Below are positions 53,801-59,800 of a stretch of 64,000 nt of DNA, piece after piece. The translations under genes and the position numbers were made by a program. This DNA comes from Macrostomum lignano (taxonomy: Eukaryota), in the NCBI GenBank assembly GCA_002269645.1, contig NIVC01000692.1:247950-311949 (forward strand), read 5' to 3'. The notes beneath the pieces are model-generated. The model ran no database searches and had not been told where the DNA came from. It was given only the letters and a program-made list of their open reading frames with translations. The stretch's first letter is position 1. Every line of letters starts with the position of its first letter.

Positions 53801-56800
53801 ACAGGCGAACAAGGTTAATTATTTGTCTTCAAAAACTGACTGTGTATTTGGTCATGTTTTGTTTACCCGCGATAGTCGCCTTGAGAAGACTTGAGAATCG
53901 TCTCGAAGAAACCAGGAAAATCGCCCTAATAACCCGTTAGAATCGCCCTCAAAACCACTGAGAATCACCCTCTAAAGAACCAGTGAGAATCGCCCTCAAA
54001 ACCACTGAGAATCGCCCTCTAAAGAACCCGTGAGAATCGCCCTCAAAACCACTGAGAATCGCCCTCTAAAGAACCAGTGAGAATCGCCCTCAAAACCACT
54101 GAGAATCGCCCTCTAAAGAACCAGTGAGAATCGCCCTCAAAACCACTGAGAATCGCCCTCTAAAGAACCAGTGAGAATCGCCCTCAAAACCAGTGAAAAT
54201 CGCCTAGACCTCAAGGTTCCATGAAAATCACCTGCATCAAGGACTCTGACAGTCGCCATGAGGCTATTAATAGTCAATTTCATTTACCCTAATAAGTCTT
54301 GAGACCAGCAGGTATCATCTAATCTAATGGAATCAGCTCACCTATTTTAATGAATTGCCTTTATAGTAAACTATAAAAGTGCAAGCACCAAAGCTTTAAT
54401 CACCCGTCTCCCCTCTCTTCACCAACAGGTGATGATCTACCGGTTTGTGACGCGCAACACAGTCGAGGAGCGAGTAACCCAGGTGGCAAAAAAGAAAATG
54501 ATGCTCACTCATCTGGTTGTGCGACCCGGCTTCGGTCAGAAGGGCGGCTCAGCCGCCATGAGCAAACAGGAACTGGACGACATCCTGCGCTTTGGCACCG
54601 CCGAACTGTTCAAAGATGACAATAACGAGGACAGCGACAAGGACCGGATTGTGTACGACGATGAGACAATTAGCAGACTGCTAGACCGGACCCAGGAGGG
54701 CATGGAGGAGAAAGAGCTGGCGCTTAACGACTATCTGACTTCTTTTAAGGTAAAGCATTCACGAGCGAGAAATATACCATTTTATTTCTTTTTTAGCCAA
54801 CACAAACAACTTACCTTCAGTCCACTTTTTACTCGCATTTTATCTCACCCGTTATCAGCCCTTCTCTCACTATCAATCTCACCCCCTTATCAGCCCTTCC
54901 CTCACTATCAACCTCACTTCCGTATCAGCCCTTCTCTCACTATCAATCTCACCTCCGTATCAGCCCTTCTCTCACTATCAACCTCACTTCCGTATCAGCC
55001 CTTCTCTCACTATCAACCTCACTTCCGTATCAGCCCTTCCCTCACTATCAACCTCACTTCCGTATCAGCCCTTCTCTCACTATCAACCTCACTTCCGTAT
55101 CAGCCCTTCTCTCACTATCAATCTCACTTCCGTATCAGCCCTTCCCTCACTATCAACCTCACTTCCGTATCAGCCCTTCTCTCACTATCAACCTCACTTC
55201 CGTATCAGCCCTTCTCTCACTATCAATCTCACCTCCGTATCAGCCCTTCTCTCACTATCAATCTCACTTCCGTATCAGCCCTTCTCTCACTATCAATCTC
55301 ACTTCCGTATCAGCCCTTCTCTCACTATCAATCTCACCCCCGTATCAGCCCTTCTCTCACTATCAACCTCACCCCGTATCAGCCCTTCTCTCACTATCAA
55401 CCTCGCTTCTTATCAGCCCTTCTCTCACTATCAATCTCACCTCCGTATCAGCCCTTCTCTCACTATCAATCTCACCCGTTATCAGCCCTTCTCTCACTAT
55501 CAACCTCACCTCCGTATCAGCCCTTCTCTCACTATCAACCTCACCTCCGTATCAGCCCTTCTCTCACTATCAATCTCACCTCCGTATCAGCCCTTCTCTC
55601 ACTATCAACCTCGCTTCTTATCAGCCCTTCTCTCACTATCAACCTCGCTTCTTATCAGCCCTTCTCTCACTATCAACCTCACCTCCGTATCAGCCCTTCT
55701 CTCACTATCAATCTCACCCGTTATCAGCCCTTCTCTCACTCTCAGCGCTGCCAACCAATTTCTCACCGTCAGTCCCATTCCCCCTTTGCCCTTCCTATTC
55801 CCCTAGCCAGTCCCACTATACTTACTCTACTAACTAATCTTTCTCTCATTCCCATATCACGCGCGCTCTCTAAGCAACCCTAATCGCCATTTTACGCGCA
55901 TCATCACTCCCCCAGGTGGCCAAATACTCTGTAAAAGAGACGGCCAGCCAAGACGAACAGGACGACGAAGACGAGGACGAAGGCCGCGAGATCATCAAAG
56001 AGACGCTGGAGCCGGCCGACCCGTCCTATTGGGACACCCTGCTGCGGCACCATCACGAGCAGTACCAGGCCGACCTGCACAGCACCATGGGCAAGGGCAA
56101 GCGCAACCGTAAGCAGGTTAATTATTACACCGTAGGCGTCGTTGGCGCGCAACAGGACGACGACGACGTAGACGGCGCCGGCCACTCCGAGGACGAGTCC
56201 GAGTTCTCTGGCCGACCCGAGGACGACGACGAATTCGCCGACGGCGAAGCCGCCGCTGGACGTCGACGCCGCGATCGGGACGTGAAAATGCCGCCGCTGC
56301 TGTCCAAGCTGAACAATCAGATTGAAGTATTCGGCTTCAATCCTAGGCAGCGGCGGGCGTTTCTCAATTCTGTAATGCGATTCGGGCTGCCGCCGTCAGA
56401 TGTCTATAATTCGGCTTGGATGTCCAGAGACCTGCGCTCCAAGCCCGAGAAGGTATGCGGCCTGGGGGCAGGGTTGCTCAGTGTGTACCATCGATACGAG
56501 CTACTAGAAAAACTAAATATCAGTCGTCAAAATTAGCGCGCTTTATTAGATATTAATTAAGGGGATGTCAACTTAAGCACCAGAATGGAGCCCGAAGTTC
56601 AGCTCCGGACCAAGCCGACTGCAATCGATAACTTGTCGGCCCAGACGACTAGAATCACCGAGACATCTCATCCCAGGCCTGACTTGGGGTCCCAGGGGAT
56701 AAAGGGGATAAAATGGGGATCTCATGTCAACTTAAGCACCAGAAGGGAGCCCGAAGTTCAGCTCCCGACCAAACCGACTGCAATCGATAACTTGTCGGCC

Positions 56801-59800
56801 CAGACGACTAGAATCGCCGAGACATCTCATGCCAGGCTTTGACTTGGGGTCCCAGGGGATAAAGGGGATAAAATGGGGATCTCATGTCAACTTAAGGCTC
56901 TGGAATGGAGCCCGAAGTTCAGCTCCGGACCAAACCGACTGCAATCGATAACTTGTCGGCCCAGACGACTAGAATCGCCGAGACATCCGCTGTGCCACTA
57001 TGTTCCGCTATGTCGTTGAGTGCTGCTTTGCTGCCATGCCATTAAGCAGGAAAATGTGTTAACGAGAGGCACAAACCGTATCAGTGGTTGCAGTCAGCCG
57101 GCTTCAGCGAGCGCAGCCGATTAGACGTTGTTATCGAGAACTCGATGGCAAAGTACAACCGGGCGCATCCAGGTTTTGAATCATTTAAACAGCTGCCACC
57201 GTCATGGACAGGGCTATCGTTGTTCGAATTCGGTGAGAATTTCATGCGCCGAGTGTTCTTGTCCAACGAACTGGACGAAATTGAGCAGCTGCGCTTCAAC
57301 TGTGATCTGACGCGTGTCCCCTCTGCTAACGCAAGGGCATGGATTGCTATCAACCCGCTGGATCCAAAAGCTCGGGGTTCCCCCGAATTCACACAGAGAA
57401 TTCGACAGAGTTTCGGTGGGTCCGTATCAACTAAATCAAGCCGATGATTACATTCAAAACATTCGTGTCAGAGGTTCTCGGTAGCTACGAAGGTGACTCC
57501 TGGAGAGACTTTGAGTCGCTCACATCCGAACTTCCGAGCCACCTGAAGTGTTGGAAGTTTCGGCAAGAGACGCAGCCAGAAATCTGAAGCAACCGATTCG
57601 GTCGGTGGCATCCGTCTTGGATTTTTCTAGCTGTCGTTTTCTCGCGCCATAATTCGAAATCCTACCGCGTGATTCTTAGAGTGTGTGACAGCAGCAGACA
57701 ATCGCTTTGGTTTTAGAGATCCAGGATTGCAACTTCTTCATGGCTACTATTCGTCTGCAAAAGCTGGAAATACGACTGCAGGCTGCGATTGTCATGCAAT
57801 GGCAGTGCTCAAACTCCTGGGCTGCTACTACGCTTACCACCAAGATAGCTATCGAAGGTCTGGTGCTAGCCTTCGCTTTGTTGATTCCGCTCTTCCACGC
57901 AGCCTTGTTGCCAGACTTTATGCCAGAGAAAATGCTTTACCACAGCAGTGAAAGCCTACTGAGCAACAGCCTAGCGGCCAGCAAGAGGAGTTTCAGTCAG
58001 CCAGCAGCAGCTCACGATCCAAGCCTCAGTCTTCAAGAGTCTTTGGTCTTCAAAACCATGGTCAGCAGTGCTACGCAACTGTTGTTGCACAACTGTTTCA
58101 CTGCATCAGCAGCAAAGTCCAGCTCTTTCAGCCTGTCAGAGGTGGGGCAGTGAACACCGCAATGACCAACCTGATAAAGCCTGTGGCGACTGGATCAGCA
58201 AGCGTAGATCAACTTGTCGAAGCTATCCGAAGCCGATATCCGCAGCAGTTTGCGCCAAGACAGCAACACTGCATGAACGAGGTGCTACAGTGCATTCTGC
58301 CAGAGTTGCAGCTGCAGCGTCATTGCCTAAGCGAATTTACACTCGTACGTGCGGTAGTTGCCTGACTAGCACGGAGGAGCTGCCCATAGGAGTTCTAGAT
58401 AATCGTATCCTCAGCATCTCCTTTTCAACCGCACTGTTAACTCTAGAAGGTCTCTACGCTGCTTTTACGGCACCAAAGCACGTCCCATGCACCAACACCA
58501 ACTGTGCAGCTGATGGTGTGCAGGACGTTCAGGTCTCTAACGGGAGAGTGACCCTGATGCATATAGATCGCATTGGAACCGATGGTCAAAAACTGAATAC
58601 GCAAGTCTGTTGGACAAGGGTAACATCTCCAGCTTGGTATGTCCAATATTCACAGTGTCCCATTACGGTAGTAAGCCCTTGGAAGAGCACTATACATCTT
58701 GTGTCCTGAAAGTTGGAGTGTGGAAAAAGCTGGACGACATGAGAGTTCAAAGAGACTACAATCCATTCGTTCATGAGCAATCTTTCATTACCTTATAGCG
58801 CTGCTGCAAGTATAAAGAGACCCATGGGATCATCTGCCAGCATGTTTAAACCACATTGTTTCATTTCGTTTAAAAAAGCATCCGGAGCCTTACCTTGGGC
58901 TCCATTCCAGAGCCTTGAGTTGACATGAGATCCCCATTTTATCCCCTTTATCCCCTGGGACCCCAAGTCAAAGCCTGGCATGAGATGTCTCGGCGATTCT
59001 AGTCGTCTGGGCCGACAAGTTATCGATTGCAGTCGGCTTGGTCCGGAGCTGAACTTCGGGCTCCCTTCTGGTGCTTAAGTTGACATCCCCTTTTTACGTT
59101 TCTGAAGTTCACTCATTAAGTTTTACAAGATATTTACGGTTTTTTGAAGCCGCAAAAATCGCCTCTGGCTTTCTAAAAGCAGACCCATTAAATTAGCATC
59201 TTCACCCTGTTTAAACCTGCACCCAAAAAACCTGTGCGTGTGCATAGCGAGCAAGAGAGAGAAAAGGGATGGCGCCCCAGCCCCCAGCCCGGCTGATAAA
59301 CAATTGGGCTTTCCTCTTGCCCGCTTGTGTCTGACTTTGACCTCCCCTAAATGCTCTCTCATTGGCTGAGCCAGATTGGGCCTTCCCTAGGCTGCATTTC
59401 GTCCGTCTGACTTTGACCTCTCTCCTTACTGCTCCCTCATTGGCCGAGCTAGATTGGGCCTGCCCCCTAGGCTGTGTTTCGTCCGTCTGACTTTGACCTC
59501 TCTCCTTACTGCTCCCTCATTGGCCGAGCTAGATTGGGCCTGCCCCCTAGGCTGTGTTTCGTCCGTCTGACTTTGACCTCTCTCCTTACTGCTCTCTGAT
59601 TGGCTCTCTCAGCTGAGTTTCGTTCGTCTCGCGCCCCAAACGCCCAGTCCTTTGAACTAATAGCTACCTTAACTGAATTTTTAAGCATCAGAATCGCAGT
59701 GCCATTTGGCATCCTCCGTCCAAAGTCAAGACTAACATTAGCATCTAACATCTAACACTAACACGTACCAACTTCTCTACCCTACCCCTTTACACTTCTG

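Follow-up and report, generated by a model that had tools for sequence, protein, structure and literature searches.

A decayed cut-and-paste transposon copy in Macrostomum lignano and a probable PHIS-related family that pairs a transposase with a USP-type deubiquitinase

We analyzed a stretch of 64,000 nucleotides from the flatworm Macrostomum lignano (GenBank assembly GCA_002269645.1, contig NIVC01000692.1, positions 247,950 to 311,949 of the forward strand), which is called the window in the following. The window contains at positions 56561–59090 an element of 2530 bp with long inverted repeats at both sides, and the interior of the element comprises remnants of a transposase gene and of a gene for a USP-type deubiquitinase (peptidase family C19). 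We consider it likely that this element is an internally deleted, mutated and non-autonomous copy of a cut-and-paste transposon and that the full-length members of its family, which is related to the PHIS assemblage (PIF/Harbinger, ISL2EU and Spy), pair a transposase with a USP. Relatives were found as proteins (P numbers) and on short contigs (L numbers) from JGI 3300040801 and from Logan SRR31252246 and SRR31252247. With their help the parts of the element can be assigned as given here:

56558–56560, no strand: left flank, putative host half-site TAA (TAA next to GGGGATGTCAAC in the window; AAA in the relative L006)
56561–56987, plus strand: left terminal inverted repeat (TIR), with the terminus GGGGATGTCAACTTAAG followed by ~2.7 units of 159 nt, from repeat analysis
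56988–57587, plus strand: transposase remnant, C-terminal third (residues 362–559 of P0008), from tblastn with P0008 and P0009 in three frames
57588–57616, plus strand: spacer of 29 nt from the transposase stop to the USP start, equal in length in L006
57617–57680, plus strand: remnant of USP exon 1 with the stops TAA (57650–57652) and TAG (57677–57679), from comparison with L001 and L006
57681–57805, plus strand: putative GT..AG intron of the USP gene, 125 nt, the removal of which restores the frame
57806–58798, plus strand: USP exon 2, pseudogene, with the stop TGA (57949–57951) and the terminal TAG (58796–58798), from tblastn with P0001 in three frames
58881–59090, minus strand: right TIR, ~1.3 units, with the end ...AAGTTGACATCCCC, a terminus kept in L003
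59091–59093, no strand: right flank, putative host half-site TTT (window and L003)

The element is inserted in sense orientation into a CHD3/4/5-type gene, within an intron that interrupts the CHDII_SANT-like coding region. The preceding exon ends near 56453 and the following one begins near 60044, and the location in a CHD intron that the initial annotation of this DNA had proposed is correct. The CHD3/4/5 (Mi-2) gene itself extends over ~43735–61511 on the plus strand and encodes, in this order, chromo, SNF2-related, Helicase_C, DUF1087, CHDII_SANT-like, and CHDCT2 domains.

An element bounded by TIRs at these positions had also been proposed before, and the repeats bear this out: the best pair of inverted-repeat arms (56724–56929 and 58881–59086) comprises 206 nt with 96% complementarity, and the outermost pair (56559–56718 and 58933–59092) 160 nt with 86% complementarity. 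The left arm is built from a tandem unit of 159 nt in 2.6–2.7 copies (TRF 56565–56987, 95% matches), the third of which stops short at an internal deletion junction, and the right arm consists of ~1.3 copies of the same unit. The core sequences of the TIR unit have no further match elsewhere in the 64-kb window (0 expected by chance). Both ends of the element are GGGGATGTCAACTTAAGCACC, and the terminal motif across the copies is G-N-GGATGTCAAC, with GGGGATGT, GAGGATGT, and GTGGATGT as individual termini. In the window the left end GGGGATGTCAAC is preceded by TAA and the right end GTTGACATCCCC is followed by TTT. The left end of L006, at about bp 102, is GAGGATGTCAAC preceded by AAA (also written as AAA before GAGGATGTCAACTTAGG), and the right end of L003, ~240 bp past the USP, is GTTGACATCCAC followed by TTT. 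Three of the four termini are thus flanked by a perfect AAA or TTT and the fourth by TAA. A target-site duplication (TSD) is found neither at the window copy nor at the flanks of L006 or L003. The target-site models of piggyBac (TTAA), Tc1/mariner (TA), PIF (TWA), and ISL2EU (AT) were considered as well, and they do not fit these flanks.

The missing TSD and the abundance of minisatellites in the window would also be expected if the locus were a domesticated host locus, in which a USP lies beside a co-opted transposase and the inverted repeats came about only by local duplication of a 159-nt minisatellite in inverted orientation. We regard this as very unlikely. The outermost 12–35 nt of the repeats are kept in L003 and L006, exactly outside of the coding block and beside AAA or TTT, and the window copy resides within the intron of an unrelated gene. 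Furthermore, all copies other than L006/L001 are decayed, as relics of a transposon would be, and the deleted derivative that is seen in the window also occurs in a different gene model of M. lignano. In this gene model, P0010 (UniRef A0A1I8IYQ6, taxid 282301), several stretches are near-identical to translated sequence of the element: the TIR unit, the junction between TIR and transposase that was created by the deletion, the transposase tail, and the sequence ahead of the USP. None of the rest of the model is CHD sequence. Since P0010 shares the junction but has surroundings other than CHD, the deleted derivative apparently has a second copy at another locus and has probably spread after the deletion took place. 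An exact look-up of P0010 in the contig index gave no match. P0010 is listed as a DUF3480 domain-containing protein; the model is a chimera of TIR, transposase-tail, and USP-upstream pieces together with other sequence and is probably an annotation artefact.

The presence of a USP, read across three frames, was the central claim of the initial annotation. When the three frames are joined, the resulting 274 amino acids match the Pfam profile UCH (PF00443) over positions 1–237 of 254 with 29.4 bits (E=7.6e-07), which is above the gathering cut-off of 23.9 bits, and the same profile matches P0001, an intact relative, with 55.2 bits (E=1.1e-14). The Cys box, SHYG..EHY, and WKKLDD follow each other in the canonical order, and a QQH box and a CxxC...CxxxxC pattern are present in addition. 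On the sequence the catalytic Cys is TGC 58069–58071, the His is CAC 58688–58690, and the Asp is GAC within 58733–58738, and the reading frame shifts near 58340–58350 and again near 58607–58628; the positions of the catalytic residues, their retention, and the frame changes near 58340 and 58610 had all been given correctly.

The alignment of the DNA with L001 and L006 places the start of the USP gene at 57617, upstream of the region that had been considered so far. At this position the window has TTG where the relatives have ATG. Three in-frame stops follow (TAA at 57650, TAG at 57677, and TGA at 57949), and the GHY box has undergone a G-to-E exchange, giving EHY. Judged from these defects, the USP of the window is a pseudogene and the copy is dead. 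We give hardly any weight to the alternative that frameshifts and stops are errors of the assembly and that the USP of the window is in fact working. Long-read assemblies of genomes rich in repeats often contain indel errors and the three catalytic residues are retained, but the defects are mostly substitutions and indel errors are therefore not a sufficient explanation: the start is lost, the three stops were made by substitutions, the glycine of the GHY box is replaced, and two thirds of the transposase gene are deleted. Such a combination of substitutions and a large deletion is atypical of indel errors.

The catalytic domain is without introns, as had been noted before, whereas for the whole gene this probably does not hold. 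Its 5′ part contains the putative 125-nt intron, and the counterpart of this segment in L006 is a GT..AG segment of 116 nt (L006 2688–2803). Excision restores the frame in both cases, and L001 is devoid of the intron segment. The USP gene thus probably has one short 5′ intron ahead of the catalytic domain. Compared with the proposed 116-nt intron of L006, it is a slightly larger stretch of 137 nt (L006 2675–2811) that is absent from L001, which is either a transcript spliced at other sites or a genomic deletion variant.

Relatives of the USP are few. A word-indexed protein search with the USP of the window gave no match, exact look-ups of the open reading frames (ORFs) of the window in the contig index were negative, and scans of metagenome contigs (with P0001 and P0008) as well as two scans of viral contigs yielded zero loci. 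The relatives surfaced only when 1.84 billion representative proteins were searched exhaustively with HMMER, which produced six matches at E≤0.001. One of these is P0001 from L001, an intact USP of 362 amino acids (E=6.7e-34 to the USP of the window) with the boxes GLRNIGNDCYAN ... SHHGHSATGGHY ... WWLMDD. The His and Asp boxes are kept in P0002, P0004, and P0006 at 24–35% identity to P0001; the Cys box is kept as well in P0004 and in L002, the contig of P0002, and the truncated P0006 does not reach it. An AlphaFold2 model of P0001 from an alignment of six rows is poor (mean pLDDT 48.6). When this poor model was compared with the PDB by Foldseek, all of the top 50 matches were USP catalytic domains, among them USP12, USP18, USP1, USP36, and USP8, with TM-scores of only 0.2–0.4. 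Because there are only six relatives, a UCH match, and USP matches in Foldseek, we read the family as a genuine, very divergent, and compact orphan clade of C19 that is far from the canonical USPs of the host.

Two of the distant homologues were seen in another context. In L004 an intact USP homologue of 338 amino acids (P0004, 899–1918) lies alone between short tandem-repeat arrays, and 68 nt upstream of its ATG there is a terminus-like motif GGGATGTCAAC (GGATGTCAAC) at 832–841, for which neither an AAA flank nor an inverted partner was found. This USP could be a USP-only derivative, or the motif could be there by chance. In L002 (1–1335) the frame of P0002 is open through the Cys box but lacks an in-frame ATG, and the 500 bp upstream of the USP contain no transposase; P0002 may be a solo copy or a host copy, or an upstream exon may have escaped notice.

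Proteins related to the transposase were retrieved with a chimeric query composed of L003 and window sequence, which matched P0008 (E=6.2e-72), P0009, and P0010. In tblastn the remnant of the window is detected with E=1e-49 by P0008 and with E=3e-28 by P0009. It begins at the third catalytic motif, has at least three frameshifts and internal stops, ends at the natural TGA 57585–57587, and is 72% identical in DNA to L007. The window copy lacks some 360 residues at the N-terminus of the transposase, and what remains of the third TIR unit borders directly on the deletion junction. We also considered 57088–57587 as a separate ORF1 with a GT..AG intron of 56 nt (57416–57471) and rejected this model as P0008 codes straight through the segment.

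P0008 is an intact transposase of 560 amino acids. It has a C2H2 finger at residues 3–25 and at residues 104–141 a weak match to HTH_Tnp_4, a helix-turn-helix (HTH) profile (21.3 bits, E=2e-4, cut-off 27 bits). Its matches to zf-C2H2, HTH_Tnp_4, and DDE_Tnp_4 are weak but collinear. The conceptual transposase of L007 reaches 31.4 bits with HTH_Tnp_4 and thereby exceeds the cut-off of 27 bits, and L003 has a weak match to the same profile (E=0.003). By eye the catalytic residues of P0008 are D197 (LIGD), D291 (IFDRGY), and E372 (RFAVECTFAAIK) with a spacing of D93-D80-E; the motifs LIGD, IFDRGY, and R..VE..F...K were compared with the PHIS signature. The motif R..VE..F...K is a C-terminal signature common to IS5, Harbinger, and related transposases. 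A sequence search of the PDB with P0008 returned the zinc finger as sole match, and an NCBIfam search gave no match.

The architecture of a full-length member emerges from the relatives. L006 (3023 bp) comprises the left terminus, a leader of ~0.8 kb, an intact gene for a 560-aa transposase (900–2582), the spacer of 29 nt, and the USP gene, which starts at 2612 and, after removal of the intron, is open to the end of the contig. The 3′ end of L006 overlaps the 5′ end of L001 at 89–95% identity, and the intact USP follows in L001. L003 (2092 bp, from the same JGI sample as L001) contains a decayed transposase, the USP, and the right terminus; its alignment with the window covers a point just inside the left TIR, the transposase tail, the USP and, in inverted orientation, the TIR terminus, and decayed transposase motifs can be read from the translation of its upstream part. 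The order transposase, USP, terminus is therefore common to the window, L003, and L006/L001. Accordingly assembled, a full-length member would start with the terminus G-N-GGATGTCAAC and the leader of ~0.8 kb, followed by a gene for a 560-aa transposase with C2H2 finger, HTH_Tnp_4, and D197/D291/E372; after a 29-nt spacer it would carry a gene for a C19 USP of ~360 amino acids with a short 5′ intron, and it would end with the inverted terminus.

These comparisons also bear on the question whether the USP is a one-off capture as in Pack-MULEs, that is, whether a non-autonomous TIR element took up a fragment or a retrocopy of a host USP that has no role for the element. In favor of a capture one can quote that the transposase of the window is non-working and its USP a pseudogene, that the catalytic domain is intronless, and that the USP homologues of L002 and L004 are without a transposase on their contigs. 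On the contrary, L003 and L006/L001 are only 64–75% identical in DNA to the window, and the order of transposase, USP, and terminus has been kept through this substantial divergence, which argues against a single capture event, as does the identical spacing of 29 nt. In addition, P0001 is an intact ORF of 362 amino acids with the catalytic boxes, the canonical USPs are very distant with no more than the six matches mentioned above, and the USP gene appears to have a conserved intron of its own. Thus a capture is unlikely, and the recurrent gene order, the orphan clade, and the putative intron also speak against the one-off host retrocopy that the initial annotation had named as a competing explanation.

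Returning to a PHIS-related family with a transposase and a USP, we have to ask how it relates to known systems. Spy elements insert at AAA/TTT without a TSD (Han et al. 2014, Genome Biol Evol, PMC4122938) and form the PHIS assemblage together with PIF/Harbinger and ISL2EU (PMC4482050). The USP family resembles Spy in its cut-and-paste character, in the highly variable length of the TIRs, in the AAA/TTT flanks without a TSD, in the invertebrate hosts, and in a DDE transposase with an N-terminal HTH (PMC4122938). The differences are nevertheless considerable. Autonomous Spy elements have one ORF, whereas two genes occur side by side in the USP family, as seen in the window, L003, and L006/L001; the catalytic spacing is D(79-80)D(44-62)E in Spy and D93-D80-E in P0008; Spy ends with GGANNNNG instead of G-N-GGATGTCAAC; and long Spy TIRs are without subrepeats, whereas the TIR of the window consists of 159-nt tandem units. 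Spy has not been reported from flatworms (PMC4122938). With PIF/Harbinger and ISL2EU the family shares a transposase with HTH_Tnp_4 and a probable DDE_Tnp_4-type core and an accessory second gene (PMC4482050). However, this second gene is a Myb/SANT ORF in PIF/Harbinger, which generates a 3-bp TSD (TWA), in contrast to the USP and the flanks TAA and TTT of the window copy; and ISL2EU has YqaJ, a THAP finger, and a 2-bp TSD (AT) where our family has a USP, a C2H2 finger, and no TSD. We therefore classify the family as a new lineage with a USP gene that is related to PIF/Harbinger-ISL2EU-Spy and appears to integrate in a Spy-like manner but is not a member of Spy.

Several points weigh against this assignment and should be kept in mind. 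The placement in PHIS is derived from profile matches, motifs, and flanks, the DDE_Tnp_4 match of P0008 (residues 207–247 to profile positions 12–53, E=0.011) is below the threshold, and both the spacing D93-D80-E and the terminal motif are unlike those of published Spy elements. Only four termini have been seen, and AAA and TTT could be the last bases of the TIRs themselves. The full-length structure was assembled piecewise from short contigs. Moreover, the short contigs L002 (P0002) and L004 (P0004) are without a transposase, so some members of the USP family may be solo genes or host genes. The copies of the USP that were compared have diverged to ~30% amino acid identity or, in the case of L001 and L006, overlap over only ~390 nt.

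A protease of family C19 as cargo of a transposon is not without precedent. The initial annotation had called C19 cargo unknown, which was too strong: Helitron-like elements of the HLE2/Helentron type stably carry UCH or OTU domains (HELIANO, PMC11417382), and this is the only case that we found in the literature of a published transposon family stably carrying Pfam UCH. For cut-and-paste elements we found no report of a USP beside a transposase. The two systems have in common that a ubiquitin-pathway protease is carried as accessory cargo (PMC11417382). Helitron-like elements use a rolling-circle RepHel protein and have no TIRs, in contrast to the DDE-based cut-and-paste type seen here, so that the UCH domain was presumably acquired independently. 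Proteases of other families are known from further transposons: Ulp1 (C48) from KI-MULEs, CACTA, and Ginger, and OTU from Ginger and Helitron2 (PMC2836005, PMC8978399). Again a cysteine isopeptidase is located beside the transposase or fused with it, and its role for the element is unexplained. The difference is that the protease of our family is a C19 enzyme, whereas those belong to another clan and family (C48 or OTU) and to other transposon superfamilies. The surveys of Spy and of PHIS list no protease ORF (PMC4122938, PMC4482050), and full-text literature searches turned up no USP in any PHIS, Spy, or Harbinger element, the entries of Repbase and Dfam being outside the scope of these searches. 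Within this scope the suggestion that the family is undescribed has held up.

The features of the USP might give a hint at its function. At least one copy of the gene is intact, it lies beside the transposase, and the catalytic boxes are kept across the family at 24–35% identity to P0001. We take it to be a functional second gene in the role which the Myb-like ORF has in Harbinger and the YqaJ ORF in ISL2EU. The target of the enzyme would then be the transposase, a host factor, or a chromatin factor, from which it removes ubiquitin or a ubiquitin-like modifier, and this would shield transposition from ubiquitin-dependent turnover or silencing. By analogy with the Ulp1 and OTU proteases of other transposons such a mechanism is conceivable, but we put it forward with reserve. 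The close spacing of the two genes suggests that transposase and USP are co-transcribed; that the pair is operon-like in a flatworm which uses trans-splicing is speculation from general knowledge. The window copy is inert today, and past movement would have been possible only with a transposase supplied in trans. Taken to its full extent, the proposal is that of an undescribed PHIS-related group of macrostomids with an obligatory, highly divergent mini-USP, an operon-like unit with a 29-nt spacing, and Spy-style integration without a TSD, in which the deubiquitinase guards the transposase or a chromatin target against ubiquitin-dependent restriction. This far-reaching version is a tentative one, and the odds are somewhat against it.

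The remainder of the window contains further mobile and repetitive DNA. An uninterrupted ORF of 343 amino acids on the minus strand (34360–35391) codes for a transposase of the mariner/Mos1 type (HTH_48 with 37.4 bits, weak DDE_3 and Transposase_1) and may represent a young mariner copy. It is adjoined by a minus-strand ORF of 487 amino acids (35947–37410, RVT_1 with E=4e-27), a fragment of a non-LTR retrotransposon. Minisatellite arrays with periods of ~34–80 nt are located at 328–1119, 11007–12953, 46800–47433, 50059–51241, 55510–55744, and 59329–59604, several of them in CHD introns, and they give rise to long spurious ORFs. An exon of an amino-acid permease is found at 3112–3720. Two ORFs have no Pfam match, one on the minus strand at 41117–41932 and one on the plus strand at 18856–19974, the latter being a polyglutamine-rich ORF of 372 amino acids in a GC-rich block.

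The accessory genes of DNA transposons, such as Myb-like genes, YqaJ, Ulp1, OTU, and TET/JBP, are poorly understood. If our reading is true, the USP family would be the third independent recruitment by mobile DNA of an isopeptidase acting on ubiquitin or ubiquitin-like modifiers, after C48 and OTU, and it would strengthen the case that transposons have repeatedly needed to escape control that depends on ubiquitin. It would also extend AAA/TTT insertion without a TSD to flatworms, with a transposase whose spacing is unlike that of Spy. For annotation it means that at least one gene model of M. lignano in UniRef (A0A1I8IYQ6) is a chimera derived from a transposon. With ~4 kb and two genes, and with M. 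lignano as a transgenic model organism, the system is tractable.

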